The position numbers and the translations under genes were made by a program. A stretch of DNA of 64,000 nt, taken from positions 8,804,001-8,868,000 of the forward strand of contig NW_025964112.1 in assembly GCF_023055435.1 (NCBI RefSeq), in the 5' to 3' direction. The first letter of the stretch is position 1. Every line of letters begins with the position of its first letter. Shown piece by piece: positions 2,199 to 28,303 of this stretch. The stretch comes from Haliotis rufescens. Its lineage: Eukaryota. Below the pieces are notes generated by a model. It was not told where the DNA came from. It saw only the letters and a program-made list of their open reading frames with translations, and ran no database searches.

Positions 2199-5100
2199 AT
2201 GAGGCTCTTGTTCCTGTTCGTGTTACTGCTGTTTTCGGTGGTTTCCGGTAAGTTTATTTACGTCTCTGCCTTTTGAATTGTAAAATGGTTAAATGGGATA
2301 TTCACTCCATAAACTGGAACGACGTGGTGTCATCAAGTATCATTAATCTGTTGTTACTATTCGCTAGATACTGGGTCCTGGGGGTGCTTGGAGAGCCTAT
2401 AGGATTTTGATTCTGCTGAAATAATGGATCATGCAAACACGAACACTATGATTTATGAGTGAAGTTGTAACATATATTTCTCATCTAATTTGGGGCGGTG
2501 GAGTAGCCTGGTGGTAAAAGCGTTCGCTCGTCACGCCGAAGACCCGGGTCTGATTCATCACATGGGTACAATATGTGAAGCCCATTTCTGGTGTCCCTCG
2601 CCATGATATTGCTGGAATATTGCTAAAAGCGGCGTAAAATCAAACGTACTCACTCACTCATCTTATTCGTGTTATGGCGACTGAAACTCGAACCCTACCA
2701 ATTTCTTGCGTAACCCGGCACACCCTGTACCATCGCAAAACCTGATACAAATTTGCAAATCTCTCGAGCACTAATATATCTGTTATTTCCTGTGAAAGCT
2801 AAATTTTAAATGCGAGGATGTTGATTTAGCAATTAGCGAGAACAAATTAAAAGAACTCATTGAATAATTTTCCAGGGAAGAATGGAACCTCAGATGTGAT
2901 CGATTTCTCCCAACTAGTAAACTGCAGCGATCTACAATCTATGTTGTTAATTGAACAAAAGTGTCTTGAAGAATACGGCGTCACCTTCAAAATTCCATCC
3001 TTAAGCGAAATCAACAACTCGTCCGGAGCTGCATTATTGTCTTCGATAACCCCAGGTTATTTAGATGACATGTGTAGGTTAGTATGAACAATTCCTTTAA
3101 TAACACTTTAATAACATCAACAATCATACTTCATGCTACTATTAATGATGATTGCGGCATTGGAATAGCGAAAAACAAGATCAAATGATAATGATAATTG
3201 AAATACTACCATTATGATTTTAGTGCAGTGACTGATGTTTTACGCCGCAGTCAAGGATGCCCAAGTATCAATGTATGAAGTCGAATATTGACCGGGCAAT
3301 CCGGTGACTGGCGTTTTTGATGCATGTCATCGAATCCCAATTGCTCATGCTGTAAATCAGCTTGATGGTTTAGGCTCGATTATTTATAGACTGCCACCCT
3401 AAAGCTGGAATATTGCAAATCTCAATAAAATTAGACATCCTAATAGGTTCATGTCAGAACGACATTTCATCCCATCAATCAGTTAACCAGATCGGGAAAG
3501 TGACAGTTGGAAAGTGTTTTCTGATCATGCAAACTCGAAATGGTTTATACGAGGTATTCCGAACGACAGTAAAGGGCTGTACGACTGATTCCATAAAAAG
3601 ATCGTCTTCGTCTCGCTTTAAAGGATAATAAACATTTGAAAGTGACTTTAACAGAAGAAAATTGACTATAGCCCGTAGGAAGTACTTGACAATTAATGGG
3701 ATGACCTGAGAGCTCTGTTTAGCAGTTGGTATATTGCTAAGTGTGGTGCTAAACAACAAACAAAGAAACAAAGTAGTATTTGACATTAACCCTGCTTGAA
3801 CAACAGTATGGTTGTGTTTGGGCTATGTTTCTGCAATTGCGTATTTTTTTGATTATATGATACAGAGTATATGATACATTCAACCTTTTTATAACATTGT
3901 TGCAAAATAAACGAAATGATTCTCGTTCACGTTGTCCATGTAATAACATTGTCATTTGACGAAACGTTCAGGAATCTTGACGGTTATGGGAAGGCCGCTG
4001 ATTGTGTTGGTAACATAAACAGGAAGTGTTTAAAACAGACCGATACGTCTCCGACGGCAGACAAGATAAAGAAGTGGCAAGAATATGCCTGCGCCAACAA
4101 GGACAGTGAGTATAGCGTAATTGTTAACCACTGACAAAGGAATTGGACACAATTGTCACCGGATCCTATCCGTTATGTCAGTAATAGACCATAGTAAACG
4201 CCAGAGAATAAACAGTCTTGATTATCTGCTCAAACAGATTCAATTGGTCTTAAATCACCTCTGATAATGTGACATGTATCAGTGTTACGAAGTTTCCAAC
4301 ATGAAACGCAAAGCTAATCCTAGAAATGGGTTTGTACAAGCTAAAATTGTGAAATAAGTAAATGACCAAACATGATTAATGTATTTTATTCAAAAATACA
4401 GTTTAATGTTTACAATCAAAACAGGCAGTACAATGGTCAAACAAATGGCAATAGCAATAAGTATCAGGCCTCACAATATATTTCCGAGCACTCACGAATG
4501 TCCAGAAAATTTCAGTCGAATGTCGTTAAACAATGCTGCCTCTATTTTAGAATTCAAGCTGGTTTTGGAATTCGGTAATTTTCAGATAGGTATCCCGTCT
4601 GTACTTGATAGGTAGATAAAATGCAAGACAAGTTGTAAAAGACCTCGAATCGCACTCTTGTCGCTCTTATATAGGTACAACCACCCTTTTAGAAACTGTC
4701 CAATCCTGAAACTTCTCGAATGCTCAAGACTGTCATGTTTGTCAACAACCAAAGGGGTAACTCTATGTCTTTGAAAGGCATTTAGATGTGATACACATAA
4801 GGAAAAGAATGTATGGATATCAACTTCTTTATTATTTATATATATATATATATATATATATGTACATGTAAGGACAACACAATTAAAGTCCAAAAACAAC
4901 TTGGAAAATGAAACTGTTGGTGGTTCATGAAATGTGTAATATTCTGGAATTTTTAGGGAAATATATGTTTGTCTAAGAATGTTACTCAAATTTAAAGAGT
5001 CAATTCCCTTTTATGATATGAGGGATGACTTCAACCTTTCAATAGTCACCTTTTGTTGAGCAATATTCCAGCAGCTCCAGATTTTGGTGTCTACATTTCA

Positions 5101-8100
5101 CAACTTGAGTTGTACAATCGAGCATGCTCTTTCCTTCAAAGAACGTTATGCGACCCTTGTGCAAAATTGTTTGATCAAGGTTACAACATTCAAGGCCACA
5201 TTAAAGCTTTCCAAAGCCGTCCTCTTTCCTTTCTGGTTACCATAAAAAAAAATTCTATTGTAAGCTGAGTAGATGTAAAGTTGGATTGAATTCAGGATTA
5301 GTTATCAAAACAGGATATGTTTTGAAATTTTTGAACCACGTAAGATGTGTTCGAAAGAAAAATGCTTGTCTGAAATATATTGTTTATTGATAAACCTCGA
5401 TAACTCGACCTTCATAAACTGAATAAATTGTTCAAGGGGATGTACAAGTCCCTTTGGCTCTGTGATATCAAATCACTCGAAACTACAACCAGCTCTATAT
5501 ATTTTGATTTACTCCAGTACTTCGAGAAATGAGGTTTCTCGGTGCACTAATTCATTTTATTGATGTCAATTTCCACCTTAGATGTTAAGAAACTTGCTAT
5601 CTTTTTTAACTTTACCCTAGGCATCCGTAAGAACTTATACCAGTACATAAATAAAACAGTACTGTTTTTATAATCCCCGGCTATCTAGTTGTTTAACTAT
5701 TAAGTACGTCATTGTTCCTCAAGAGCTCAACATGACCTGCATGGTCGAAGTGACGTCTAAAATGGGGGACTGTGCCGATGTCAGCAGTTACATAACCACC
5801 AATGATTACCTTCACCTCAACTTTACTGAGTTGATGCACAAGATAGATTGTTTGTGAGTAACTTGTCGTCAAATACTAGTATCCTTCTTTAAAATGATAC
5901 AACCCGTGTGCGTGAGTGCGTGTATTTATCTCATGACCACCATTCTTAGTTTTTATGGAAGTTCACAGGCAGGAAAACATTTGTGTAACTCACATCAGGC
6001 CTGATTAAAAGATTATTAGATTCTTGCTATCCTTTTTACCCCAATAGTCGTACATGGTATCATAGAAAGGCTGATTGATATCCATGAACAGGTTCTTCCG
6101 ATATTTACTTTTCCCCAAAACTACAAAACATCGAATCTTTGACATTCCATCATTAGCAACTAGAAGATATCAACCTCATTAAGTCTTTACATGAAATACA
6201 TTACATTACAATACCAAATCCGTTGAAAGTTAATTTGATGTGCCTTGTACATGAAACAGAGCTATAACCCCTCACAATCTAATCAAAATCTTAATTATAT
6301 TAAAGGTTGATTTCATTTGAATTATCTATGTCAGGTCAGCACAGATGTCGTCGCTATGTGCCCGAAAGTACATACCAGCCTGTGGCGAGGCCGCACTCCA
6401 TATGTATGAAGCAAACGTGCCAAACAACACAGACTGCTCGTCATTTGCTACAGGTTCGTCACAACAGGACTGACAGACATCCTCACACACATATGATCAG
6501 TAAAACAGCAGATGGATTAAGGAGATGTAGTTGTGTGCAAAGGCTATTAATGAACATTATATTAACTCTGTTGTGTGTTGAGTAAAGTTGTAAATAATTA
6601 AATATAGTTACTAGTATATACGATCTATAGCCCAAACGTTAAACTGTACCTGTCATACTCTTAGGGATGCTGGCGACGGAACATTATATATTCAACCTTT
6701 CTCAAAACCTAACTGTCATATCATTTTGGTGTTATTTGACTGTAAAATATTCTTATTCATTTATTGTTGCAAGAGCTTTAGATCGATGCTCATGATGTCA
6801 ATCGATGGATTATCTGTTCGAGAATCGATTATTTACAGGCCGCCATCGTATAGCTGGAATATTCTGAGTGCGGCGTTAAACAACAATCAACAAACAGACA
6901 GACAAACAAGCAATTTCTGGTATTTGCCATGTGCATACATATTTTCTGGTCGTTTCATCGAGTAGGTTTGGGAATCATTTATAAACAAGCCTTCCTGTAA
7001 ATACATGTACCATGGCATATTCCTGCGACTTGATATTAATTCATTCACTTCCGTCAGGCCCAGACATCGCCAGCGTGGACTGTTCCACCACTGAAAACAT
7101 CCGAAGCAGCTACCATCAATGCTTATTGTACAACAGTGTATTGCTAGATGTCCCGAAGCAACTAACAAGTGAAGGCACTAGCCATTACATTATGAACGCT
7201 ATGGCAATGAGTGAAAGCAAGACGATGTGCAGGTATATGTAATTTTAAGAAATCGCTTACTACCACCTCGAACTCCTCTAGTTACAAGTGTCTGTGTTCA
7301 ATATTAATATAAAACATCAAAGCCCCCAAAACCAGTCTCGAGTATCCATTGGACCAAAAGGCAAGATAGCAGTTGATGGATCACGGAAAATCAGACATCG
7401 CGGGTAAGCGATTGATCAATATTAACAGTATTACAAATTTAGACATGAGATATGTGAGAAAAGTAAAGTTCTTTTTACAAATGTGCAATCTCAACCAGGA
7501 TGACAGCGGTATTTTGACCGTTATATCTGAGGTTGCGCTGCTTCTCTGGCGTCTGTTATCTATCGCCGTCTTCGACATTATCAATAAACATTTTCTTGAT
7601 GTTGCTTCAATTGTCGCATGGTTATCCATCCGTAAAGAAGCGGGATTTCATATGCGTACAGAAAATAGCGCTTCTTCCCGAGGCAAGAGAGTTAACTGAC
7701 TATAAAAGTACAGTTTCCAGTCCAGCCAGTTAACTCTCTTGAATCGGGAAGATGAAAATAGCGCGGCATAGATCTTAAAGTCTCCAAAATATATTTCTCC
7801 ATTTTCAGGGTTCCTTTTTAAATTACTTATATAGAAAAACATATATCTTTATCTTTTATCAACCAGTAACATTATTTGTCAATTGTATGTAATTACAAAG
7901 CTTTAAGCATTGTATTATTCGAATGTACATCTAATTCATGCTTCGGAAATACTTATTTTGAGAACTTTTAAAATCATTTTGCTTCCATTTACTATCTTCC
8001 GAATTTTCTTATGTAGAACTGATGCAAGCATTTTAGAAATTTTAAAAATGTATTACCAAACAAGCAGGTGAGCTACGTTTTAATGAGACGATACTGATAC

Positions 8101-11012
8101 TATTGAACATTTTTACACCAGGCACAGTTGACCGATATGAAATGGTTTTCAAAAAGGGCACTTTAAAGGGAACGTGAACCTATTTCAGAAGCAAGTATCC
8201 CAGCATGAATTATAGAATGACTAAATAGTACGTGTTACATATACAGAATATACATAAACATACAGCGTGCTTCATAAGTTACGTTCTATGTCGTACAGTA
8301 ATCTGAAGAACTACCAGCTGACAGTGAACTGTGTGTAACATACACAGAATATACATAAACATACAGCGTGCTTCATAAGTTACGTTCTATATCATACAGT
8401 AATCTGAAGAACTACCAGCTGGCAGTGAACTGTGTGTAACATACACAGAATATACATAAACATACAGCGTGCTTCATAAGTTACGTTCTATATCATACAG
8501 TAATCTGAAGAACTACCAGCTGGCAGTGAACTGTGTGTGACATACACAGAATATACATAAACATACAGCGTGCTTCATAAGTTACGTTCTATATCATACA
8601 GTAATCTGAAAAACTACCAGCTGGCAGTGAACTGTGTGTAACATACACAGAATATACATAAACATACAGCGTGCTTCATAAGTTACGTTCTATATCATAC
8701 AGTAATCTGAAGAACTACCAGCTTACAGTGAACTGTGTGTAACATACACAGAATATACATAAACATACAGCGTGCTTCATAAGTTACGTTCTATATCATA
8801 CAGTAATCTGAAGAACTACCAGCTTACAGTGAACTGTGTGTAACATACACAGAATATACATAAACATACAGCGTGCTTCATAAGTTACGTTCTATATCAT
8901 ACAGTAATCTGAAGAACTACCAGCTGGCAGTGAACTGTACTCTGTGGGTACAGGAGCAGTGCAGTGACCACGTGACAAAGCCGATGGTGGCCGACTCCAA
9001 GACAGTGCAGGACGGCTTGGCTAAACTCTGCGGCCACATCCAGGGTAAGATATACGTCAAAATGTCCATCCGTTATTTATACGTGTATGTCTTTGTTGAG
9101 ACTCGAGACGCACACAACATTCAAGTTCCATAATTATACGTGTGTAGAGGTTGGCATTTTAATTTTTTTTTAAACCCGGTGAGATTTGAAAGTCATTTTT
9201 AAAGTATACAGTGCATGGATACAATATATTTATTTTATTTCAAACTAGTATATACTAATTTAAATCCGGGATATAGAGTCATACATGTCTTCGATTTTTA
9301 GACGTGTTGAAGGTGGAATTTTTAAAACGGCGATATTTAAATTTAAAAAGGAAGAACTATGTATAATTTAGAAAAGGCATTCTTTTTTATTTAATTCAAA
9401 GTTGTATGGTATTTTTATTTAAGAATGATATAGTGAATCTTTCTTATAATTGTCTGTTCCTAGATTTCGACACTCAGTGCGTACAGAATGCACCTAAAGC
9501 AGTTTGCGGCAGTGGCCATGGACTCCAAGCTTTGGATTCAACTAGCCCAAGACACCTTTGCGCGTAAGTAAATTTCATCAGAGATCTTTCGGTTCAAAGA
9601 CACCATGACGGTCTGAAGAATGCTTAGTACCTTATTAAATATTTCTATGTTAGATCAATGGTGTATTCACGTGGATAATTGGTAAAGAAGTTGCATGCAT
9701 GTATTGAGCTGCAAACAATATAGCAGGCTCTACCGTGTTTACAACCCACGGTGTCACTGGTAGTCCAAAAGGATATCACAGTATGACTGAACGCAACTTT
9801 AATCAGGCTGAACTCAGTAATATTCCATCTAGATGCATTAACCGGGGACCTATCAATAGTCGTGGTCAGTCAGACCAGTGGTTGATAGCATGAATAAAAA
9901 TCCACGCCTGGATTGCATGATGACGCACAATCACTCAGGTGACACACTGTAACCACCAGATGTTCATTAAGTTTCTGACACCCATAGTATATATTGTAGC
10001 AAAACAAATAAAAGCGACAAAACCCTATGTATAACCAAACGAATTCTCTATTCAAAGTAATGACAATTGTGATATGGTTATGAATAACTAGTGATGATGA
10101 CAGTTGTTCCCGATGTGATCGTATTTGTTTCACCAATGTCACCCGTCACAAACACGTGCAATGGAAAGTCAATGGTTGAGCTGAATTTGTTTCGGAAATG
10201 TGTTCCACAAGTCTATCAAACACATTTTAAAAGCTTTACTAAGGTTTCAATGTTGCAACCCCGATGGAACAACTTATGTGCATGAGTCGTATGAAGATTT
10301 ATTGAATCTTCGAACGAAAGCGTTAGACCAGCTTTTGTGAAACGTGTACTAAGGTTAAAACAAGGCGTGTGTTCCCTTTCCGCGAAAACCTTGTGTCATC
10401 TCTCTATCAATGGTTGAGCTGAATTGCTTTGGAAATGTCTTCCACAAGTCTATCATAAACATTTTAAAAGCTTTACATAGGCCTTGAATGTTGTTACCCT
10501 AATGTGCAGGAGTATGAACCTTTATTCAATCTTCAAACGAAGGAGATGGACCGGCTTCTGTAAAACGTGTACTAACGGTAAAACAGGACATGTGTTCCCT
10601 TTACGCGGAGACCTTTTGTTCCCTTTACGCGGACACCTTGTGTCATCTCTGACTCAGTATGATAATTTCAAATAAGTTTCACTTTTTGCCTTTTGCGCTT
10701 TATGGAATATGTCCGTAATCCAGACTGGTTATTACCTGGTATTAACGTTTTCTTATTCACCATGCTTTAAATAAGTGTCAAGAGTTTTCAGATTCCTTGC
10801 GCCTTTTTTATATATGATATTTCTACTCAGGATTGTACATGGTAACTCTGGAAGTGTTTTTGCTTGTTTTCAGTGCCACTAGTGCCACCCGGAAGTGTCT
10901 GGTGTCGGCAGTGAGTGGCTGCAGCAAGACGACTGTCAGCATGTACGAAGACCTCCTGCGTAGCCAATCCCCGTCTATGTGTCTGACCGCTGGGTCAGTC
11001 GTAATTGGCTGA
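2199..11012 (+). CDS. Gene A1: secreted Cys-rich protein, 395 aa, signal peptide + two 12-Cys domains (uncharacterised family)
   Basis: Nine phase-consistent GT-AG exons: 2199-2247, 2876-3077, 3972-4105, 5724-5853, 6335-6453, 7058-7232, 8905-9044, 9464-9563, 10874-11012 (1188 nt, no internal stop). Starts MRLLFLFVLLLFSVVSG (signal peptide), ends ...SPSMCLTAGSVVIG*. Exons 2-9 each have 3 Cys; several N-x-S/T sequons. Frame is preserved in the A2 copy. ATTAAA at 11053-11058. Confidence 0.85.
2491..2660 (+). mobile_element. tRNA-derived SINE with (ACTC)n tail (copies ~17689-17857, 38497-38572, 45325-45408, 51292-51450 -, 51467-51585, 62070-62200 -)
   Basis: A-box TAGCCTGGTGG, degenerate B-box, body GATATTGCTGGAATATTGCTAAAAGCGGCGTAAAA, ACTC tail; dispersed copies. 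Confidence 0.85.
5005..5230 (+). mobile_element. Penelope-like RT C-terminal remnant (related pieces at ~10000-10650 -, ~47900-48290 +, ~58425-58865 +)
   Basis: YDMRDDFNLSIV...SNIPAAPDFGVYISQLELYNRACS resembles the YDKRDDF...SNIP..PAYGVYISQL.RY.RACS motif. Confidence 0.65.
8233..8938 (+). repeat. 101-bp tandem repeat, 7 units, spanning the intron 6 / exon 7 boundary of A1
   Basis: Acceptor ACAG|TAATCTG recurs with exon starts at 8299, 8400, 8501, 8602, 8703, 8804, 8905. Confidence 0.95.
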
Positions 11013-11709
11013 TGTAGATTGTCAGTTACAGCTTCACGTAGCTTAAACGGAGATTAAATATGTTCCAATATCTACATCGAAGTTGTTTTAAGTTTTGTTA
11101 TTCCTGTATTTTCCTGGTTTGTCCAGGTATTTTGCAATGCTAACCTATGTTATTGACAGTGTATTTAGAAGTGTAATATTTTTCATACATGACCTTCTGA
11201 GGATAAAAATCAGGAAAGTACCCGAGAGTTATATATTATAAATAATTATTGGCTGTCGTTTGATTTAGGATAACCACAGAACAAGAATTCAGTCTCTGAT
11301 CGGGTTCTGTGCTAGCTGATAACACAAACAAATATTAATATGAGGGTTGTAAATAAAGCGACAGAACCCTTTCCATATCCAATATAAATCTCTGTATAAA
11401 GCAAAGTCGATTATACAATTCCGATTATATCATGAGCATGTGTTTATAAATCACTATAAAATAGTAATCACACCAGGTTCCGCGAAAAGGTGAGCATATC
11501 CTGCCCCACCGGGGGCACCCGTCACAAACACATGCAAAGGCAACTCAATTTGTAAGTTCGATCTGAATGTATTATGACGTCACAGCTCGAAAATGCCGTG
11601 AAAGCCCCTTGACACGTTGTCAAATTTGTATGTGTTGAGTTTGTAACGTATTTTAAGAAACTAAAAGAAAATAGTACAAAAGAAAGTCCACATTCAGATT
11701 GTTCGGGTT

Positions 11710-13804
11710 TCACCCCTGAAATACTCCAACTCTCGAATATATAAGTGCGAGTACTGTCATTAACATTGAAGCCACACGTTTGCCAGCCCGGCTCTTGGGG
11801 ACGGGTGTGGTCGTCCTTCCCCCCTGCACACAGGGGGCGGGGACCTGGGATGACAGCAGGTGCGTGTACAGTTCAGCAGTGCTTGGACCACAGGATTCCA
11901 CAGAGGCTTTCATGCAGTCGGTGATGGTTTGGATGATACTGTTGGGTACAAAAAAAGTAAATTAGGTTCATACACTTTCAACACCTTACTCCATGTTCCA
12001 ATCTCGGGTCCCCGTGAAGATCCGTGTTAGAATTTGGGCTTTTCGTAAGACTATCGGGATCTGGTTGTTAGGCTCGCTGACTTGGTTGTCGCATGCCATC
12101 GTATCCTAATTGCGTAAATCGATTCTCATGATGTCAATCACTGGCTTGTCAATGTCGTGATGTTAAAGGGGATTGTACGTACATCAGAAATATACATATT
12201 TATGTTACTCCAAAATCAGCTGTAACTCAATGTACATTCTCTTGCCAAATACCCCGAGTTCTGTCTGATTGTTGACAACTTTTGGTATATCACTTGCCAG
12301 GGGATAAATCCAAGAACAGGTATTACGGCAGCTCGGTGGTTTACGACGACACACTATAGCTGCCAGAATCCGGTCGTTGTGTGTTCGAATCCCGGGTTTG
12401 AAAGCATTAGGACCGGGACACTGAGCACTGTTACACATTCATATTCAAGTTATAGAGTCTGGCCACCCTTTAGGACAATGGTGGACCAATCTTACAATGG
12501 AATCCCCACGGGTCTGTTTTATCGAAGCACTAACAGTACATTATTTACCATATTCACATAACTACAAAGCAGTAAGGAAACGTAAAACTTAAAATTGTTA
12601 TCCATAGAGTTGTTCGTTTACTTCTTACACACCAACCTCTAGAATGCCAATCAAACAGCTACAAAGCAGCACATGTTTTAATAATGCAATGGTCAGACAT
12701 ATCCTCAATCAACATTTTATCTATCTACCTGCATATTTGCTCGGGCGTGCTGGAATTAACCATCCATTTCTCACAGGTGCTCTGGTCGGCGTTCATCACA
12801 CAACCGGAGGCAAATTCTAGAAAAACAACATACGATAAACTCTAACTGGATGTCCAAATCTATGTCACTATTGTTCAATCAATTTTAAAGGTATTTTACG
12901 TTGATTGAAATTTTTTTTTCTTAAAGAAATACACAAACTAAAATCTGAACAACTAATAACTGAGCTACTATATGAAAAGTGCTACTGCGCTGTAGCTCAC
13001 CTGGATATGTAATTTATAATGCCAACAAAGACAGCCACAAAAATTAATATTTAAATATTTTCTGCTTAAATTCTAAACTCTGCATAAATACTGATTAAAA
13101 CAAAAGGTCAACGCCAGAGAATAACCAGTGTCGAATATCTAGCGAAGCATATCTAAATCTTCATGCCAAAGCAATGAACATTTGTGTTTTAGCGTTTGTA
13201 TTACACCTACTATCAAAATCCTTGTGTTCGCAAAATGAGGTCATTCCGAGAGTGGTAGAATGGGGGTCAGCAAACAGGTGTCGCTTGGACGGACTGCACT
13301 GTGTCAGGACAGCAAGGGTACAGCTGACAGCGTTATGGTAGGCCGACATGTTGCTGAGAAGGCAAATAAACAATGTTACATGAACAGAATCGGTAGGTAG
13401 AAACTATAAAATTGTCATAAGAAAGAAACCAGAAACCATGAAAAGCACCCCGTAGTGCAAGCATGCAATACCAGTTGCATTAAATGCTTTCAACCCCTAT
13501 TATATAAAAGATATATAAAAATCGGATTAAGAAAATGTCGTTCATTACGAACCCACTGTGTTCTTCGAGTATTATGTTATATTTTCAACATGACAATGTG
13601 ACTTTTACCTGCACATGTCTCTATGTCGGGACACTGTGAGACCTTTCAGTATGTAATCCGTTGTTTCTTCTGGTGATGACAACTGAGGCACTTCAAGGTA
13701 AAAACCTTGGTACAATAAGCAGTTAAGAGCTCCGTCCTGTATCCCTTTAGTCGTTGAACAGTCCACGCGGTGCGTATGTCTATTTGAGAGTTCAACTGTT
13801 GTAT
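11710..13804 (-). pseudogene. Gene B1: 5'-truncated duplicate of B2 (last four exons only)
   Basis: Exons 13804-13609, 13353-13211, 12816-12729, 11938-11710 match the last four B2 exons with intact frame. The exon equivalent to 29423-29308 is not present in 14200-14720, and homology to B2 ends at the junction near 14870, so no signal peptide or start is visible. Confidence 0.65.
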
Positions 13805-14870
13805 CTGTGGTCATAGGTCGCAAGGAATAATTATTCAAATGATTACAAATGTAACCTTCACAAATATCGACAAAACGCCGCGATTTTGCTTCATCTATCC
13901 CGAGAAGGGGGTGCCTAAGTGTCCTATCCCTAAATATCACTATGATGTTTTACATAAGGCAGTTTATGCATTTCATATTGTTTTCTCTGTAAACCTCAGA
14001 TTTCTTTTGATTTCATTTGTGAAACGGCTCATAATTGTTTGAAAGACTCATGAATGATGCAGATTATTTGTGACGCACAAAAGGAAAAGAACATGCATGT
14101 CTAGACATTATCTTGACTTTACCACAAAATGTTGAAATCGTACGCGCTGATTGTGTAACATTTCTTGAACTCTCTTATCAAAGTGGTCCAACACCTTTGC
14201 ACAACTTCCAGGAGCGATGAGATATTTCGATGATAACGAAAAAACAGTCCGTACTTATCTTTGTTTTCGTGTGTATGTAGTTAATTACATATGCCTATCT
14301 TGTGAATTGCGGGGTGTTGTTTCAGACTACGACACATCACGCTGCCGGTAATTCTTACTTCACGATAAGTGATAAGGAAACAGAGCACACACGCAAAGAT
14401 TACCATCTGTCAGTTCTAACAGTTCTACTCGCAACCTCGTCAGTGCTGCAAGGTTAAGCATTTGGTTTTCGAACATCCAACATTTACTTTATATTCCGTA
14501 TTTTAATACTGGACCTAAGTTCGGAACCAACAGGTACATTATGTAAGGAACACATAAGTAAAATACTAATGATACAATGTGCAATCAGTAGAAACAATAT
14601 GACAATTGTAACCTCACCTTCCTTTCGCAAAGAGAAATGCTGGTTCCACAGCCCCGTTTGATTATATGCTTTCAACGAATGATGTCTTGCTCTTTCCACG
14701 CAGCTTTGGACAGTGTTTTATGCCATATCACATAAATTTGTGAGGAAAGCACAAAGTGATGCAGATCCTAGACGTTTACTATTTCTGTAAAACCGGATAT
14801 AGTTTTGAGACAATCAGATACAGAACACAGCTCTTGATCAGGAGATTCTTGGATTCGAACCCATGATCCA

Positions 14871-16616
14871 TTTCATTTAATGTTAAGATATATGTTTCAC
14901 TCTCATCATCGTCAGATATAATAAAATCTTGCAAAATACCAGTTCTTGCATTTAAATCTCCTGCATGTATAATAGAAAGATCTTCAAATTTACAAAGTTT
15001 CTTAAGTAAACATTGCTCAAGATAATCAATACCTCTAACATCATGGATATCAGTCTTTGTTGGCGTAGTTTCAGGATGTACGTAAGAAAACAAAAGTAAA
15101 GTATCACGTGGTAAACCAAAAAATACGTGATCAAGTATTATAAATATACAGTCGGTACAAGTTAAATCAACATGTTTAACGCCTTTAAACAGTTCATATT
15201 TGACGAAAAGAGCGACACCACCTCTGGTATTGTATTCACGAAAGTTTATCATAATATTGTGATTGGGGAAGCTTTTTTTCATATCTTCTTCAGAACAGTT
15301 GCTCCAAATACCTGTTAAACAAAACAATTCAAATAAAGAGCAAAACCCAACGAAGGATTTGTCCTGCAACTTGCGATTCAAACCGTTAACGTTCCATGAC
15401 ATGAACGAAAAGTTTCTTCATTTACCGTTACAATCCACGGCCCGGCCGAGATCCCAGCTGTAAGCGCTACGCGCGGGTCCGCCCCCACCATGACCTCCAC
15501 GTGAACGAAACGCGGGACGGCCGCGGCCGCGACCTGCTCTGAATACCGTTCTTTCAATCTCAACTGGCCTTTCATTTTCAAAGTCTTATGTGAATACCTT
15601 TCCATTTTCATAAATCAGTTTATCAAATCTAAGCTTACATTTCTCACCAAGTGCCTTTGAATCATCCATTATTGTTTTTAACATTTTATGCTTATTTCTA
15701 ACGTTTTATGAATAGTCTTCCGAAATACTGTATGAAGTACCTTAGAGTCGTTTAGCATTTCTAAGGATAGACTATTTCGTACCATAGTCTCTTAATTTGA
15801 TATTGAGAGATTTACTGTTATTCAATCTATGACAACGTTCAATTGCCATATCTGAATCACCCATTTCCAGATTGTCCTTAATGATGTTACGTACTATATC
15901 TTCACAATCTGTCCATGTCTCTGATTGTTTCTCTTTCACAACACCGTGGAATAGCAGATTATTTTTACGGCTTTGGTTTTCTATATAGTCCAGTTTGTCT
16001 GTGACTGAAGACAGTGTTGTGTTGATTTTAGGGTACCGTTTTCTTCCTCGAGTTTGTTACATCTCACAGACAGGGCGTTAACGTTGCCTGTAAGAGAGTT
16101 AATCGACTTTGGCAGATACATTCTTTATCTCGGATAGAAGCTTTTCAAAGTCTGAAGTTTCACATTCCTGACCCGATGTCAACTTGAGCTGTTTCGTGTT
16201 GGTTGTACTGTTACGGGTTTCAGGTCCTGGGTTAGGTTCGACGCCAGAACGCAGCAGTAAACCGATATGATACTCAACACTTTATATGAAGTCGAAACAT
16301 CATCTCGAGCTGTACTTATTGTAGCTTTTGATAAATCTGCAGGGTGTTGAGGTAGTAATCCTGATGCTCTCTGGACCAGATGATACGACGTATCCGGAAC
16401 AGAGAGAAAATTTTGGCAGAAGTGTATCCTAAATTCGTGACATGTAAACAATGTCGAGGTATCCGTTTTGGGGAATGGATATGGGGTCTGCTGATGTGGT
16501 TCTGTGTGGAATGGGAACGAGTCGGCAAGTGATAGTATTGCGGTTGAAAGTGTTGTTGATATGACCCATAATGAAGTGAGTAACACCGTCGTGAGCGTCA
16601 CTCGGTAAGCCAGGTC
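14871..16616 (-). mobile_element. Degenerate LINE (CR1/L2-like): ORF1 + APE endonuclease start of ORF2, 3'-truncated
   Basis: ORF 14779-15402 has APE motifs SWNVNGL, GGVALFVK, AGDLNARTG. Upstream are L1/CR1-type ORF1 motifs (SRKNNLLF, AIERCHRL, ISEDYS) and LRSGVEPNPGP, with frameshifts. Confidence 0.85.
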
Positions 16617-17403: not shown

Positions 17404-20400
17404 ATGAGGCTCTTGTTCCTGTTCGTGTTCCTGCTGTTTTCGATGGTTTCCGGTAAGTTTATTTACGTCTCTGCCTTTTGAATAGTAAAATGGTTAAATG
17501 GGATATTCACTCCATAAACTGGACGACGTGGTGTCATCCAGTTTTATTAATCTGTTGTTACTATTCGCTAGATACTGGGTCCTTGGGGTGCTTGGAGAGT
17601 CTATAGGATTTTGCTTTTGCTGAAATAATGGATCATGCAAACACGAACACTATGATTTATGATTGTAACATATATTTCTCATCTAATTTGGGGCGGTGGA
17701 GTAGCGTGGTGGTTGAAGCGTTCGCTCGTCACGCCGAAGATCCGGGTCTGATTCATCACATGGGTACGATATGTGAAGCCCATTTCTGGTGTCCCTTGCC
17801 ATGATATTGCTGGAATATTGCTAAAAGCGGCGTAAAACCAAACATACTCACTCACTCATCTTATTCGTGTTATACTGAGAACATCTTTGGTGTTATGGCG
17901 ACTGAAACTCGAACCCTACCATTTTCTTGCGTAACCCGGCACACCCTGTACCATCGCAAAACGTGATACAAATTTGCAAATCTCTCGAGCACTAATATAT
18001 CTGTTTCTGCCTGTGAAAGCTGAATTTTTAATTCGAGGATGTTGATTTTGCAATAAGCGAGAACAAATTAGAAGAACTCATTGAATAATTTTCCAGGGAA
18101 GAATGGAACCTCAGATGTGATCGATTTCTCCCAACTAGTAAACTGCAGCGATCTACAATCTGTGTTTTTAATTGAACAAAAGTGTTTTGAAGAAAACGGC
18201 GTCACCTTCAAACTTCCATCCTTAAGCGAAATCAACAACTCGTCCGGAGCTGCAGTATTTTCTTCGATAACCCCAGGTTATTTAGATGACATGTGTAGGT
18301 TAGTATGAACAATTCCTTTAATAACACTTTAATAACATCAACAATCATACTTCATGCTACTATTAATGATGATTGTGGCATTGGAATAGCGAAAAACAAG
18401 ATCAAATGATAATGATAATTGAAATACTACCATTATGATTTTAGTGCAGTGACTGATGTTTTAAGCCGCAGTCAAGGATGCCCAAGTATCAATGTATGAA
18501 GTCGAATATTGACCGGGCAATCTGGTGACTGGCGTTGTTGATGCATGTCATCGAATCCCAATTGTTCATGCTGTAAATCAGCTTGATGGTTTAGGCTCGA
18601 TTATTTGAAGACTGCCACCCTAAAGCTGGAATATTGCAAATGTCAATAAAATCAGACATCCCAATAGGTTCATGTCAGAACGACCTTTCATCCCATCAAT
18701 CAGTTAACCAGATCGGGAAAGTGACAGTTGGAAAGTGTTTTCTGAACATGCAAATGGTTAATACGAGGTATTCCGAACGACAGTAAAGGGCTGTACGACT
18801 GATTCCATAAAAAGATCGTCTTCGTCTCGCTTTAAAGGATAATAAACATATGAAAATGACTTTAACAGAAGAGAATTGACTATAGCCCGTAGGAAGTACT
18901 TGACAATTAATGGGATGACCTGAGAGCTCTGTTTAGCGGTTGGTATATTGCTAAGTGTGGTGCTAAACAACAAACAAAAACACAGAGTAGTATTTGACAT
19001 TAACCCTGCTCGAACGACAGTATGGTTGTGTATGTTTCTGCAATTGCGCATCTTTTGATAATATGATACAGAATATATGATACATTCAACTTTTTTATAA
19101 CATTGTTGCAAAACATACGAAATGATTCTCGTTCACGTTGTCCATGTAATAACATTGTCATTTGACGAAACGTTGAGGAATCTTGACAGTTATGGGAAGG
19201 CCGCTGTTTGTGTTGGTAACATAAACAGGAAGTGTTTTAAACAGACCGATACGGATACGACGGCAGACACGATAAAGAAGAGCCAAGAATATATCTGCGC
19301 CAACAAGGACAGTGAGTATAGCGTAATTGTTAACCACTGACAAAGGAATTGGACACAATTGTCACCGGAACCCATCCGTTATGTCAGTAATAGACTATAG
19401 TAAACGCCAGAGAATAAACAGTCTTGATTATCAGCTCGAACAGATTCAATTGGTCTTAAATCACCTCTGATAATGTGACATGTATCAGTGTTACGAAGTT
19501 TCCAACATGAAACGCAAAGCTAATCCTAAAAATGGATTTGTACAAGCTAAAATTGTGAAATAAGTAAATGACCAAACATGATTAATGTATTTTATTCAAA
19601 AATACAGTTTTATGTTTACAATCAAAACAGGCAGTACAATGGTCAAACAAATGGCAATAGCAGTAAGTATCAGGCCTCACAATATATTTCCGAGCACTCA
19701 CGAATGTCCAGAAAATTTCAGTCGAATGTCGTTAAACAATGCTGCCTCTATTTTAGAATTCAAAATGATTTTGGAATTCGGTAATTTCAGATAGGTATCC
19801 CGTCTGTACTTGATAGGTAGATAAAATGCAAGACAAGTTGTAAAAGACCTCGAATCGCACTCTTGTCGCTCTTATATAGGTACAACCACCCTTTTAGAAA
19901 CTGTCCAAGCTCAAGCCTTTGGTGTCTACATTTCACAACTTGTTGTACAATCGAGCATGCTCTTTCCTTCAAAGAACGTTATGCGACCCTTTTGCAAACT
20001 TGTTTGATCAAGGTTACAACATTCAAGGCCTCATTAAAGCTTTCCAAAGCCGTCCTCTTTCCTTTCTGGTTACCATAAAAAATTATGTTGTAAGCTGATT
20101 AACTCGTGTCGAAAGTTACTGTTGTATCCCTCCAACATATTTCAAACCATAAAAGGGACATTGAAAGCCACAGATGCGTTTTTAGTTCGAAATGTCAAAT
20201 CTTCAAAACGTTTTGTGCAGGATGTATTAGATGTAAAGTTGGATTGAATTCAGGACTAGTTATCAAAACAGGATATGTTTTGAAATTTTTGAACCATGTA
20301 AGATGTGTTCGAAAGAAAAATGTTCGACATACTTGGCTGAAATATATTGTTTATTGATAAACCTCGATAACTCGACCTTCATAAACTGAATAAATTTTTC

Positions 20401-23400
20401 AAGGGGGATGTACAAGTCCTTTTGGCTCTGTGAAATCAAATCACTCGAAACTACAACCAGCTCTATATATAGTACTTCGAGAAATGAGGTTTCTCGGTGC
20501 ACTAATTCATTTTATTGATGTCAATTTGGTTTCCACCTTAGATGTTAAGAAACTTGCTATCTTTTTTAACTTTAGCATAAGCATCCGTAAGAACTTACAC
20601 CAGTACATAAATAAAACAGTACTGTTTTTATCATCCCCGGCTATCAAGTTGTTTAACTATTAAGTACGTCATTGTTCCTCAAGAGTTCAACTTTACCTGC
20701 ATGGTCGAAGTGATGCCTAAATTGAGGGACTGTTCCGATGCTAGAAGTTACATGACCACCAACGATAACCTTAACCTCAACTTTACTGAGCAGATGGACA
20801 AGCTAGGTTGTATGTGAGTAACTTGTCGTCAAATACTAGTATCCTTCTTTAAAATGATACAAACCGTGTGCGTGAGTGCGTGTATTTGTCTCATGACCAC
20901 CATTCTTAGTTTTTATGGAAGTTCACAGGCAGGAATTGTGTAATTCACATCAGGCCTGATTAAAAGATTATTAGATTCTTGCTTTCCTTTTTTCCCCCAA
21001 TAGTCGTACATGGTATCACAAAAGGCTGATTGATATCCATGAACAGGTTCTTCCGATATTTACTTTTTCCCCAAAACTATAAAACATCGAATCTTTGACA
21101 TTCCATCATTAGCAACTAGAAGATATCAACCTCATTAAGTCTTTACATGAAATACATTACATTACAATACCAAATCCGTTGAAAGTTAATTTGATGTGTC
21201 TTATACATGAAACAGAGCTATAACCCCTCACAATCTAATCAAAATCTTAATTATATTTAAGGTTGATTTCATTTGAATTATCTATGTCAGGTCAGCACAG
21301 ATGTCGTCGCTATGTGCCCGAAAGTACATGTCAGCCTGTGGCGAGGCCTCACTACATTTCTATGAAACAGACGGGCTAAACAGCACAGACTGCTCGTCAT
21401 TTGCTACAGGTTCGTCACAACAGGACTGACAGACATCCTCACACACATATGATCAGTAAAACAGCAGATGGATTAAGGAGATGTAGTTGTGTGCAAAGGC
21501 TATTAATGAACATTATATTAACTCTGTTGTGTGTTGAGTAAAGTTGTAAATAATTAAATATAGTTACTAGTATATACGATCTACAGCCCGAACGTTAAAC
21601 TGTACCTGTCATACTCATAGGGATGCTGGCGACGGACCATTATATATTCAACCTTTCTCAAAACCTAACTGTCATATCATTTTGGTGTTATTTGACTGTA
21701 AAACATTCTTATTCATTTATTGTTGCAAGAGCTTTTAGATCGATGATCATGATGTCAGTCGGTGGATTATCTGTTCGAGAATCGATTTGTTACAGACCGC
21801 CATCATATAGCTGGAATATTCTGAGTGCGGCGTTAAACAACAATAAACAAACAGATAAACAAACAAGCAATATATTCTGAAATAAAGAAATTAAGTAAGT
21901 CAGATCACTGGTATTTGCAATGTGCATACACATTTTCTGGTCGTTTCATCGAGTACGTTTGGGAATCATTTATAAATACATGTACCATGTACCATGGCAT
22001 ATTCCTGCGACTTGATATTAATTCATTGACTTCCGTCAGGCCCAGACATCACCAGCGTGGACTGTTCCACCACTGAAAACATCCGAAGCAGCTACTATCA
22101 ATGCTTAATGTACAACAGTGTATTGCTAGATGTCCCAAAGCAACTAACAAGTGAAGGCACAAGCCATTACATTATGAACGCTATGGCAATGAGTGAAAGC
22201 AAGACGATGTGCAGGTATATGTATTTTTAAGAAATCGCTTACTACCACCTCGAACTCCTGTAGTTACAAGTGTCTGTTTTCAATATCAATATAAAACATC
22301 AAAGCCAAAGAATAACCAGTCTCGAGTATCCATTGGACAAAAAAGGCAAGATAGCAGTTGAAATTATATGAATGGATCACGGAAAATCAGACATCGTGGG
22401 TAAGGGATTGATCAATATTAACAGTTTTACAAATTTAAAGTAAAGTTCTGTTTACTTATGTGCAAGAATTTAGGGCATGGTTATCCATCCGTAAAGAAGC
22501 GGAATTTCACATGCGCACAGAAAATAGCCAATCTTCACGAGGCAAGAGAGTTAACTGACTATAAAAGTCCAGTTTCCACTTTTAAAGCCAGTTAACCCTC
22601 TTGCCTCGGGAAGATGAAAATAGCGCGGCATAGATCTTAAAGTCTCCAAAATATATTTCTCCATTTTCAGAGTTCCTTTTAAATTTACGTATATAGAAAA
22701 ATAAATATCTTAATCTTTTATCAACCAGTAACATTATTTGTCAATTGTATGTTATTACAAAACTTTAAGAATTGTATTATTCGAATGTACATCTAATTCA
22801 TGCTTCGGAAATACTTATTTTGAGAACTTTTAAAATCCCTTTGCTTCCATTTACTATCTTCCGAATTTTCTTATGTAGAACTGATGCAAGCATTTTAGAC
22901 ATTTGAGAAAATATAGTACCAAACAAGCAGGTGAGCTACGTTTTTATGAGACAATACTATTGAGCATTTTTACACCAGGCACAGTTGACTGATATCAAAT
23001 GATTTTCAAAAAGGGCACATTAAAGGGAACGTGAAGTTATTTCAGAAGCAACTATCCCAGCATGAATTATAAATGACTAAATAGTACGTGTTACATACAC
23101 AGAATATACATAAACATACAGCGAGCTCCATAAGTTACGTTCTATATCATACAGTAATCTGAAGAACTACCAGCTTACAGTGAACTGTGTGTAACATACA
23201 CAGAATATACATAAACATACAGCGTGCTTCATAAGTTACGTTCTATATCATACAGTAATATGAAGAACTACCAGCTGACAGTGAACTGTGTGTAACATAC
23301 ACAGAATATACATAAACATACAGCGTGCTTCATAAGTTACGTTCTATATCATACAGTAATCTGAAGAACTACCAGCTGGCAGTGAACTGTACTCTGTGGG

Positions 23401-25324
23401 TACAGGAGCAGTGCAGTGACCACGTGACAAAGCCGATGGTGGCCGACTCCCAGACAGTGCAGGACGGCTTGGCTAAACTCTGCGGCCACATTGGGGGTGA
23501 GATATACGGCAAAATGTCCATCCGTTATTTATACGTGTATGTCTTTGTTGAGACTCGAGACGCAACATTCAAGTTCCATTATTATACTTGTGTAGTGGTT
23601 GGCATTTTCATTTTTTTTTAAAACCCGGTGAGATTTGAAAGTCATTTTGAAAGTATACAGCCCATGGATACTATATATTTATTTTATTTCAAACTTGTAT
23701 ATATTAATTTAAATCCGGGATATAAAGTCATACATGTCTTCGATATTTAGACGTCTTGAAGGTGGAATTCTTAAAACGGCGACGTTTAAATTTAAAAATG
23801 AAGAACTATGTATATTTTAGAAAAGGCATTCATTTTTATTTAATTCAAAGTTGTATGTTTTTTATTTCAGAATGATGTAGTGAATCTTTCTTATAATTGT
23901 CTGTTCTTAGATTTCGACACTCAGTGTGTACAGAATGCACCTAAAGCAGCATGCGGCAGTGGCCATGGACTCCAAGCTTTGGATTCAACTAGCCCAGGAC
24001 ACCTGTGCGCGTAAGTAAATTTCATCAGAGATCTTTCGGTTCAAAGACACCGTGACGGTCTGAAGAATACTCACTACTTTATTAAATATTTCTATGTTAG
24101 ATCAATGGTGTATTCACGTGGATAATAGGTAAAGAAGTTACATGCATGTGTTAAGCTGCAAACAATATAACAGGCTCTACCCTGTTTACAACCCACAAAC
24201 AAATGGACTGGTCCTAAAGTGTCACTGGTAGTCCATGAGGATATCACAGTATGACTGAAGGCAACTTTAATCGGGCTGAACTCAGTAATATTCCATCTAG
24301 ATGCATTAACCGGGGACCTATAAATAGTCGTGGTCAGTCAGACCAGTGGTTGATAGCATGAATAAAAATCCACGCCTGGAGTGCATGATGAAGCACAATC
24401 ACCAAGGTGACACACTATAACCACCAGTTGTTCATTAAGTTTCTGACACCCATAGTATATATTGTAGCAAAACAAATAAAAGCGACCCTATGGATAACCA
24501 TACGAATTCTCTATTAAAAGTAATGTCCATTGTGATATGGTTATGAATAACTAGTGATGATGACAGTTGTTCCCGATGTGATCGTATCTGTTCCACCAAT
24601 GTCACCCGTCACAAACACGTGCAATGGAAAGTCAATGGTTGAGTGGAATTGTTTCGGAAATGTCTTCCACAAGTCTATCAAACACATTTTAAAAGCTTTA
24701 CTAAGGTCTTTAATGTTGCAACCCTGATGGAACAACTTATGTGCATGAGTCGTATGAAGATTTATTCAATCTTCGAACGAAAGCGTTAGCATAAACATTT
24801 TAAAAGCTTTACGTAGGCCTTGAATGTTGTTACCCTCATGTGTAGGAGTCTGAACCTTTATTCAATCTTCAAACGAAGGAGATGGACCAGCTCCTGTAAA
24901 ACGTGTACTAACGGTAATACAGGACATGTGTTCCCTTTACGCGAACACCTTGTGTCATCTCTGACTCAGTATGATACTTTCAAATAAGTTTCACTTTTTG
25001 CCTTTTGCGCTTCATTGAATATGTCCATAATCCAGACTGGTTATTACCTGGTATTTACGTTTTCTTATTCACCAAGCTTTTAATAAGTGTCAAGAGTTTT
25101 CAGATTCCTTGCGCTTTTTTTATATATGATATTTCTACTCAGAATTGTATATGGTAACTCTGGAAGTGTTTTTGCTTGTTTTCAGTGCCACTAGTGCCGC
25201 CCAGAAGTGTCTGGTGTCGGCAGTGAGAGGCTGCAGCAAGACGACCGTCAGCATGTACGAAGACCTCCTGCGTAGCCAATCGCCGTCTGTGTGTCTGACC
25301 GCTGGGTCAGTCGTAATTGGCTGA
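17404..25324 (+). CDS. Gene A2: tandem paralog (or allele) of A1, secreted Cys-rich protein, 395 aa
   Basis: Exons 17404-17452, 18097-18298, 19178-19311, 20684-20813, 21291-21409, 22040-22214, 23357-23496, 23911-24010, 25186-25324. Same lengths and phases as A1, all 24 Cys kept, no stops or frameshifts. The exon 3 acceptor is GAG rather than CAG. Confidence 0.83.
23088..23390 (+). repeat. Same 101-bp repeat, 3 units, in A2
   Basis: Exon starts at 23155, 23256, 23357. Confidence 0.95.
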
Positions 25325-26022: not shown

Positions 26023-28250
26023 TCACCCCTGAGATACTCCAACTCTCGAATATATAAATGCGAGTACTGTCATTAACATTGAAGCCACACGTTTGCCAGC
26101 CCGGCTCTTAGGGATGGGTGTGGTCGTCCTTCCCCCCTGCACACAGGGGGCGGGGACCTGGGATGACAGCAGGTGCGTGTACAGTTCAGCAGTGCTTGGA
26201 CCACAGGATTCCACAGAGGCTTTCATGCAGTCGGTGAAGGTTTGGATGATACTGTTGGGTACAAAAAAAAGTAAATTAAGTTCATACACTTTCAACCCCT
26301 TGCTCCATGTTCCAATCTCGGATCCCCCGTGAAGTTCCGTGTTAGAATTTGGGCTTTTCGTAAGACTATCGGGATCTGGTTGTTAGGCTCGCTGCCTTGG
26401 TTGTCGCATGCCATCGTATCCTAATTGCGTAAATCGATTCTCATGATGTCAATCACTGGCTTGTCAATATCGTGAGGTTAAAGGAGATTGTACGTACATC
26501 AGAAATATACATATTTATGTTACTCCGAAATCAGTTGTAAATCAATGTACATTCTCTTGCCAAATACCCCGAGTTCTGTCTGATTGTTGACAACTTTTGG
26601 TATATCACTTGCCAGGGGATAAATCCAAGAACAGGTATTACGGCAGCTCGGTGGTTTACGACGACACACTATAGCTGCCAGAATCCGGTCGTTGTGTGTT
26701 CGAATCCCGGGTTTGAAAGCATTAGGACCGGGACACTGAGCACTGTTACACATTCATATTCAAGTTATAGAGTCTGGCCACCCTTTAGGACAATAGAGGA
26801 CCAATCTTACAATGGAATCCCCACGGGTCTGTTTTATCCATCACTAACAGTAAATTATTGACCATTTTCACATAACTACAAAGCAGTAAGAAAACGTACA
26901 ACTTAAAAATGTTATCCATAGAGTTGTTCGTTTACTTCTTACACACCAACCTCTAGAATGTCAATCAAACAGCTACAAAGCAGCACATGTTTTAATAATG
27001 CAATGGTCAGACATATCCTCAATCAACATTTTATCTATCTACCTGCACATTTGCTCGGGCGTGCTGGAATTAACCATCCATTTCTCACAGGTGCTCTGGT
27101 CGGCGTTCATCACACAACCGGAGGCAAATTCTAGAACAACAACATACGATAAACTCTAACTCGATGTCCAAATCTATGTCACTATTGTTCAATCAATTTT
27201 AAAGGTATTTTTCCTTGATTGAAATGTCTTTCTTAAAGAAATATACAAACTAAAATCTGAACAACTAATAACTGAGCTACTATATGAAAAGTGCCACTGC
27301 GCTGTAGCTCACCTGGATATGTAATTTATAATGCCAACAAAGACAGCCACAAAAATTAATATTTAAATATTTTCTGCTTAAATTCTAAACTCTGCATAAA
27401 TACTGATTTAAACAGAATCCTATGGAAAAAAGTGTATGTCAAAGATAAGCTACCTGCCTGGCGATTTTAGAAGAGACGAAGTTTACGGAGACAGATATGC
27501 ATTTTGAGAGATTTTAAGAGCATGGTAAAAACAAGGTCAACATATGAACCATTGCATGACACCACAAACTAAACAATTACAACATTTCATTACATTTTGT
27601 ACAAAAATGACCGAGTAATGGCCGTGAATATATTTGTCAATATGGTTGCTTTGCCCTGCTCTACCGGTAGCAGCCGCCACTGACACGATTTGCAAAAGAA
27701 TGTGCTTCCCTGTGGTGTCTCACACTTGCCGTATTATCATTTTTGTCATGTCAATGATACATGTGTTGAAAATACTAATTCTGAAAAAGACAATCAGCGA
27801 CACAAGAGAAAGGAGAAAAGTTGTGCATCTTCAGCATAAAATGTCTCAGAAATGTCATATATTGCTAGTGTGCAACTAAAGCAAAAGTTGAAAGAAAACA
27901 TAATTCAAAAGGTCAACGCCAGAGAACAACCAGTCTCGAATATCTACCGAAACATATCGAAAAATGTATGTCAAAACAATGAACATTTGTGTTTTAGCGT
28001 TTGTATTACACCTACTATCAAAATCCTTGTGTTCGCAAAATGAGGTCATTCCGAGAGTGGTAGAATAGGGGTCAGCAAACAGGTGTCGCTTGGACGGACT
28101 GCACTGTGTCAGGACAGCAAGGGTACAGCTGACAGCGTTATGGTAGGCTGACATGTTGCTGAGAAGGCAAATAAACAATGTTACATGAGAAACCGTGAAC
28201 AGAATGCCCCCACACGCACTCACACGCACACACGCACGCACGCACTCAAG

Positions 28251-28303
<53 letters not shown>

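Follow-up and report, generated by a model that had tools for sequence, protein, structure and literature searches.

Unequal divergence of two homologous domains in a tandemly duplicated abalone protein, consistent with positive selection on one of them

Can two homologous domains of a single polypeptide take different evolutionary courses after gene duplication, and if so, what sets them apart? The question is raised by a 64,000-nucleotide stretch of the Haliotis rufescens genome (G000:C334:8804001-8868000, here called the window; positions are window coordinates unless another contig is named). It carries two genes, A1 and A2, which are expressed tandem paralogs and which RefSeq labels as uncharacterized H. 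rufescens proteins. The A protein has 395 residues, a signal peptide followed by two homologous domains of ~180-190 residues, and a sequence-only reading of the window had proposed that these two domains evolve under opposite regimes. We found that the domain asymmetry between A1 and A2 is real and formally significant, and that it is probably best explained by positive selection on domain 1 after duplication, domain 2 being kept near-constant by purifying selection and gene conversion. The exons concerned are the following.

2199-2247, + strand: coding part of A1 exon 1, with the signal peptide MRLLFLFVLLLFSVVS and one further base, which opens a Gly codon; GT donor at 2248; agrees with RefSeq model P0023 at the N-terminus
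2876-3077, + strand: A1 exon 2, first quarter of domain 1, with 3 Cys; 7 differences from A2, all nonsynonymous
3972-4105, + strand: A1 exon 3, domain 1; 11 differences from A2 over 134 nt, every one nonsynonymous
5724-5853, + strand: A1 exon 4, domain 1, where the gene is most diverged, with 21 differences from A2 over 130 nt; its joint to exon 5 occurs in 4 of 4 sequencing runs
6335-6453, + strand: A1 exon 5, last quarter of domain 1; 11 of 119 nt differ from A2, 10 of the differences nonsynonymous and 1 synonymous
7058-7232, + strand: A1 exon 6, first quarter of domain 2, with the motifs VDCSTT and CLLY; 40% identity to the matching exon of the neighbouring B gene
8905-9044, + strand: A1 exon 7, domain 2, the most conserved exon genus-wide; 92% identity, flanks included, to the more distant copy A0
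9464-9563, + strand: A1 exon 8, domain 2, supported by splice joints and the RefSeq model
10874-11012, + strand: A1 exon 9, domain 2, terminal exon with stop at 11010-11012; a contig of X1 runs unbroken from 10874 to 11046
17404-17452, + strand: coding part of A2 exon 1 (signal peptide), placed by homology to A1
18097-21409, + strand: A2 domain 1, in exons 18097-18298, 19178-19311, 20684-20813 and 21291-21409, all within P0007
22040-25324, + strand: A2 domain 2, in exons 22040-22214, 23357-23496, 23911-24010 and 25186-25324, all within P0007

Each A domain is encoded by four exons and contains 12 cysteines. Exons 2 and 6, 3 and 7, 4 and 8, and 5 and 9 share intron phase and cysteine positions (for example, Cys at residues 11, 19 and 40 in exon 3 and at 11, 19 and 42 in exon 7), so the two domains are duplicates of one another, as had been read from the sequence. 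The A1 and A2 loci can be aligned end to end, introns included, at 91-96% identity. Exon lengths, open frames and AG/GT splice sites are common to all four close copies of the gene (A1, A2, Am1 and Am2), and because these four have no exon indels the A1/A2 alignment is unambiguous. On this alignment, our recount arrived at exactly the numbers that had been counted by hand. Domain 1 (exons 2-5) has 7+8+16+9 = 40 replaced whole codons plus one split codon at the exon 4/exon 5 joint, that is, 41 of 194 residues, with 2 codons that differ only synonymously; domain 2 (exons 6-9) has 3+2+2+4 = 11 replaced codons of 183, with 7 synonymous-only. A Fisher test on replaced versus synonymous-only codons separates the two domains (p=0.0018), as do the Nei-Gojobori counts of nonsynonymous and synonymous differences (45:4 in domain 1 versus 12:8 in domain 2, p=0.0034) and the comparison of replaced with unchanged codons (p=2e-5).

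Introns served as a neutral yardstick for the nonsynonymous (dN) and synonymous (dS) divergence. The 45 nonsynonymous and 4 synonymous differences in domain 1 correspond to a dN of 0.106 and a dS of 0.035 (4/118 sites), next to a divergence of 0.033 in the introns of that domain (dI; 98/3018). Synonymous change thus keeps pace with the introns (dS/dI 1.04), whereas dN is well above both dS and this neutral reference (dN/dI 3.2; nonsynonymous sites versus introns, Fisher p=5e-9). In domain 2, with 12 nonsynonymous and 8 synonymous differences, dN was 0.029, dS 0.071 and intron divergence 0.061, so that dN is about half of the intron value (p=0.012). Pairwise maximum likelihood (ML) under a codon model (GY94 type, F3x4, likelihoods summed over exons) put the dN/dS ratio (omega) at 3.89 in domain 1 and at 0.45 in domain 2. 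A single omega shared by the two domains was rejected (p=0.0018), as was an omega of 1 for domain 1 (p=0.0037).

In domain 1, the excess of change ends at exon limits. Exon 4 differs at 21/130 positions, against 6/150 in its upstream flank and 3/145 in its downstream flank, and exon 5 at 11/119, against 3/150 and 0/150. Windows on exon 4 rank first among 815 windows of 130 nt, and no window free of exon sequence has more than 14 differences. All 24 cysteines are invariant across 16 proteins from four Haliotis species, and the N-glycosylation sequons, of which 7 lie in domain 1 and 1 in domain 2, occupy positions largely common to six close copies. A search of the 1.33-Gb assembly found no closer donor for A2 exon 4 or Am1 exon 3, the best non-self matches having 63% and 75% identity. 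Given the intron yardstick, the exon-limited excess, the lack of a donor and the intact cysteine and sequon framework, the data agree poorly with decay under neutrality, with a mutational hot spot or with conversion from a paralog in the assembly.

To place A1 and A2 among their relatives, the whole assembly was searched in six frames with the exon 6 peptide, and the upstream copies found were then compared. The search returned four near-identical copies on the + strand (Am2, Am1, A1 and A2; Am2 is locus L002 and Am1 is L003), a fifth copy with 48% identity further upstream (A0, locus L001) and four weaker matches on the - strand, which are the B genes, one behind each close A copy. The array is ordered as A0 followed by the four close copies, each with a tail-to-tail B gene after it, and the two-gene A/B units recur every 15-21 kb. 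Each of the six pairs that the four close copies form had an omega above 1 in domain 1 (1.28-3.89) and below 1 in domain 2 (0.44-0.77). Among six close copies, 70/194 sites vary in domain 1 and 35/184 in domain 2. Over the 16 proteins from four species, domain 1 was more diverged than domain 2 in 117 of 120 protein pairs, with a median ratio of 1.68; the 3 exceptions all involve one H. cracherodii copy with an A0-type exon 9. The 10 exonic variants among those listed from sequencing contigs, a set too small and too much a mixture of paralogs and alleles to serve as a test, comprise 3 nonsynonymous and no synonymous variants in domain 1 and 3 and 4, respectively, in domain 2.

Comparison with A0 bears on how domain 2 is kept constant. 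A0 and A1 can be aligned at the DNA level only in patches, the best of which lie around exon 7 (204 nt, 92%) and exon 9 (175 nt, 91%) and extend somewhat into the neighbouring introns; exon 6 and the region of exon 8 align at just 74-75%. The dS between A0 and A1 is 0.37 in domain 2 versus 0.83 in domain 1, and by exon it is 0.09 in exon 7, 0.35 in exon 9 and 0.5-1.4 in the others. From these alignments, short stretches at exons 7 and 9 look as if they had been converted between A0 and A1. In a second species, H. cracherodii, protein P0012 joins an A-type domain 1 to an exon 9 that is protein-identical to that of A0, which looks like conversion or crossover between array members. The low dS, the high-identity patches at exons 7 and 9 and the A0-type exon 9 in H. 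cracherodii argue that gene conversion, besides constraint, probably holds domain 2 constant. Constraint also acts, because exon 7 is nearly invariant in protein alignments of the four species.

The course of events that we favour as the likely one is therefore composite. After duplication, positive selection would have driven exons 2-5 to amino-acid change, leaving the glycosylation sites and the disulfide framework as they were. Exons 6-9 would have been held nearly constant in part by purifying selection and for the rest by short conversion tracts between array members, at least in exons 7 and 9. Domain 1 could be where the protein faces a ligand that changes, with domain 2 as its constant scaffold or docking part. 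The sequence-only reading had proposed specificity as the task of domain 1 and a scaffold or partner-binding task for domain 2, which is plausible.

Several observations weigh against a general form of this explanation. Synonymous counts are low, with 4 differences in domain 1 and 8 in domain 2, and an omega of 1 for domain 2 stands in the ML test (p=0.10). Unequal omega is significant only in the three pairs that contain A2, and the six pairs share branches and are not independent; in the other three (Am1-A1, Am2-Am1 and Am2-A1), omega is 1.3-2.7 versus 0.4-0.8 with p=0.18-0.60. Am1 differs from the other copies mainly in exons 2 and 3, where intron 2 is also 10-11% diverged and dN is about equal to dS; this block from exon 2 through intron 2 to exon 3 is an older segment, not an exon-limited burst. 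Between A0 and A1, the two domains have nearly the same omega (0.56 and 0.52 for domains 1 and 2). The contrast of a variable with a constant domain is thus right, and the claim of opposite selective regimes holds for the A1/A2 pair (omega 3.9 versus 0.45, likelihood-ratio test p=0.0018); as a standing property of the protein it is not supported, and it is shown only for the young A2 divergence.

A further point on that side would be an assembly artefact in which alleles, set side by side, pass for some of the four close copies, which would turn the asymmetry into allelic polymorphism at fewer loci. The introns of Am2 and A1 differ by just 2.4%, and the two-gene units recur at 15-21 kb, both of which would fit such an artefact. 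We consider this quite unlikely, as in each independent assembly (H. cracherodii, H. rubra and H. asinina) several A-type genes share one contig, and Am1 and A2 differ at 60/194 domain 1 residues and by 6.5% in introns. Conversion could also have produced the contrast: if the domain 1 exons were old lineages under balancing or diversifying selection, and conversion had homogenised the introns and domain 2, the differences would reflect segment ages with no recent burst. Conversion in the array does occur, as the exon 7 and exon 9 patches and the H. cracherodii copy indicate, the Am1 block is indeed an older segment, and against A0 the dS of domain 2 is under half that of domain 1. This account is nevertheless improbable, since the domain 1 dS between A1 and A2 equals intron divergence, where an old lineage with such a dN should show far more synonymous change, and since conversion tracts would need to stop at every splice site for divergence to end at exon limits.

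Selection for change would not be needed if exon-sized conversion from a donor outside the assembly, or a mutational process aimed at exons, had introduced the changes. The differences are tightly clustered in exons 3-5, and in exon 4 synonymous sites too have changed (3 of ~23), above what the flanking introns predict. A mutational process would raise dS and dN alike relative to introns, however, and only dN is raised; with nothing closer to either A2 exon 4 or Am1 exon 3 anywhere in the assembly and with cysteines and sequons untouched, such an origin is very improbable. That A2 domain 1 is simply free of constraint and decaying after duplication might be suggested by its private changes, since at 33/41 differing sites the other four close copies all lack the A2 state. 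Decay is scarcely credible, as dN threefold above the intron rate lies beyond neutrality, the frame, splice sites, 12 cysteines and sequons are intact, and RefSeq models two isoforms of A2. Positive selection on domain 1, with domain 2 held by constraint and conversion, thus remains the explanation that we prefer.

The gene models on which these comparisons depend have support from transcripts and annotation. Contigs from four public sequencing runs, which the tool takes, as a guess, for RNA, were placed on 5700-11100. Spliced contigs from 4/4 runs have joints at the exon limits 4-5, 5-6, 7-8 and 8-9; the exon 6-exon 7 joint also occurs in spliced contigs, where the tool placed it at an inner unit of a minisatellite (7232 to 8400), a position that is ambiguous among units. 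Depth is in the hundreds to thousands in exon bins and in the tens or zero in most intron bins, repeat-bearing bins excepted. The GT..AG joints and this depth contrast argue for a spliced transcript of A1, and one 812-letter contig of X6 agrees with A1 letter for letter across exons 4-6. As one contig reads through 10874-11046, exon 9 is the last exon, with the stop at 11010-11012 in use. The exon peptides of A1, A2, Am1 and Am2 are all contained in the proteins P0023, P0007, P0024 and P0025, respectively. The database proteins had been retrieved by a profile of exon-6-type peptides, and this RefSeq containment of every exon peptide is independent support for the gene model, including the start of exon 7.

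That start lies within a repeat.

8232-8938, no strand: minisatellite in intron 6 of A1, in 101-nt units, each with a copy of the exon 7 acceptor and of the 34 nt with which that exon begins

The frame of A1 exon 7 closes only with the start at 8905, in the last unit of the minisatellite, and the first 49 nt of the exon are the same in A1 and A2. A1 has ~7 units, A2 fewer, and A0 a single copy of the unit sequence. Dispersed repeats with many copies in the window lie in intron 5 (6770-6900) and intron 6 (7673-7753) of A1; summed contig depth there reaches 73,000 and is very high in 4/4 runs, which accounts for the non-exonic depth peaks. RefSeq P0023 (412 aa) begins 17 codons 5' of the signal-peptide ATG (2148-2198). 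A2 has a stop in the same stretch, so this N-terminal extension is probably an annotation artefact.

What kind of protein is A? To judge by its sequence, A would be a secreted, N-glycosylated protein found only in Haliotis. Family members occur in H. rufescens, H. cracherodii, H. rubra and H. asinina, and all are labelled uncharacterized. A profile search of 1.84 billion representatives returned 6 proteins at E<=0.001, 4 of them from Haliotis; the other two, P0005 and P0006, are unnamed ENA proteins with repetitive, short matches. The eight exon peptides matched no Pfam family at E<=10. With the full-length proteins P0002, P0007, P0003, P0004 and P0001, the Pfam matches to PspAB (E 0.24) and RGM_N (E 0.87) were both sub-threshold and were rejected, as was the one row (E 0.19) from a search of the family profile against PDB sequences. 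A lead towards the helical, cysteine-rich and GPI-anchored GFR-alpha/GAS1 group (GDNF receptor domain, PF02351) was likewise dropped, with no Pfam match at E<=10 and no GFR-alpha chain listed in four fold searches. No paper on the family was found by 12 of its locus names or by one 13-residue motif, supplementary tables being outside that search; the A family appears to be undescribed, and the phenomenon itself is of a known kind.

Predicted structures are all-helical, with a mean predicted local distance difference test score (pLDDT) of 70.9 and 71.3, and the domain-2-type part of the B model is mostly at 84-94. Among solved structures, Foldseek found no match to the two models at E<=0.001 (best E 0.17 and 2.2), and the best VIA scores were Z 6.5 and 5.4, values that the tool itself rates as common for helical models. 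On the basis of these models we claim neither a known nor a new fold.

Two of the B genes lie in the window.

11713-13805, - strand: B1, tail to tail with A1, a domain-2-like domain with a C-terminal hydrophobic tail; exon blocks 11713-11940, 12731-12823, 13191-13361 and 13590-13805
26026-29422, - strand: B2 (RefSeq P0003), in tail-to-tail orientation to A2 and bordered at the 5' end by a run of N

As had been noticed from shared motifs, domain 2 is the part of A that most resembles B: P0003 aligns to A1 residues 197-407 with 33% identity (E=2e-35), VDCSTT and CLLY included, and to domain 1 with merely 26% identity over 73 residues (E=6e-6). A B gene lies ~0.7 kb past the stop of each of the four close A copies, tail to tail (L002-L005 included). 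The B copies differ among themselves mostly in the exon-6-type exon, and in a tblastn alignment the one behind Am1 has a different C-terminal end. P0004, a two-domain relative from H. asinina, also has a terminal hydrophobic tail. With both B and P0004 ending in such tails, the A proteins would seem to be soluble relatives of forms that are tethered to the membrane. A third family member, RefSeq P0001 (327 aa; 34957-46586, - strand), consists of three half-domains of the exon-2/exon-3 type; between its exons lies a strongly purine-skewed tandem-repeat tract at ~40-46 kb, with a GC skew of up to 0.56. Upstream of the B1 exon blocks, a 207-aa open reading frame (14779-15402, - strand) resembles, by eye only, the endonuclease part of a non-long-terminal-repeat (non-LTR) retrotransposon.

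Abalone are a textbook case of adaptive evolution in fertilization proteins. If our explanation holds, the A array would be a second, unrelated and so far unnamed secreted Haliotis family with the same adaptive signature, and one with a built-in control, a homologous non-diversifying domain in the same polypeptide. It would offer a testable system for asking how selection and conversion split a duplicated domain pair into variable and constant halves, and what the abundant A protein recognises. A more speculative possibility, which we regard as doubtful, is that the array is an abalone-specific recognition system with a variable/constant layout. Each tail-to-tail unit would combine a secreted A protein, with an N-terminal domain selected to diversify and a C-terminal one that conversion keeps uniform across the array, and a membrane-anchored B protein whose only domain is of the constant type. 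Through its constant domain A would dock either to B or to some shared partner, and through its variable domain it would recognise something that changes fast, for example pathogens, gamete surfaces or cues from conspecifics. If true, this would be a recognition scaffold without a known fold relative. A solved structure would be informative, since the domain is without a solved match though the domain-2-type part is well predicted.

How, then, does A compare with known systems? The nearest language-model clusters were DUF19, CPG4 and DUF1397 (PF07165), with scores of 0.85-0.89 and 174-190/256 shared features, below the tool's 0.9 line and a lead only. These are secreted cysteine-rich domains of invertebrates (nematodes and arthropods), and A too is predicted to be secreted. 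DUF19 has 12 conserved cysteines. Neither the DUF19 (PF01579) nor the CPG4 (PF15481) model matches A at E<=10, and genome-wide their matches lie only at other loci, below the cut-off.

In conotoxin and snake-venom phospholipase A2 genes, exons diverge faster than introns. Mussel MgCRP-I peptides are reported to be hypervariable cysteine-rich secreted peptides with a conserved leader (PMC4558851). A resembles these systems in its conserved signal peptide, its invariant cysteines with hypervariable residues between them and its exons that are more diverged than the flanking introns. It differs in being a 395-residue glycoprotein with two large helical domains, of which just one is hypervariable, and it shows no evidence of a role as a toxin or antimicrobial peptide.

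Lysin and sp18 (Pfam Egg_lysin) come from the same genus. They are abalone acrosomal proteins (Carlisle et al. 2022, PMC9022041) and, like A, are secreted, encoded in a tandem array and subject to repeated duplication and positive selection. They are unrelated to A in sequence and are single-domain proteins, for which the passages used here describe no constant second domain. Egg_lysin (PF01303) has no match on A proteins, and 9/9 genomic matches lie on contigs C556 and C446, with 0 on C334; all but one of them are at C556:27.48-27.85 Mb. As these matches lie on other contigs, the lysin/sp18 array is unlinked to the A array.

The last comparison is one of layout. A is predicted to be all-helical and disulfide-rich, not a beta sandwich, and has no sign of somatic rearrangement, unlike the immunoglobulin-type arrangement of variable (V) and constant (C) domains. 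By analogy it may nevertheless be likened to that arrangement, in that a diversifying N-terminal domain is joined to a constant, homologous C-terminal domain within a multigene array that undergoes gene conversion.

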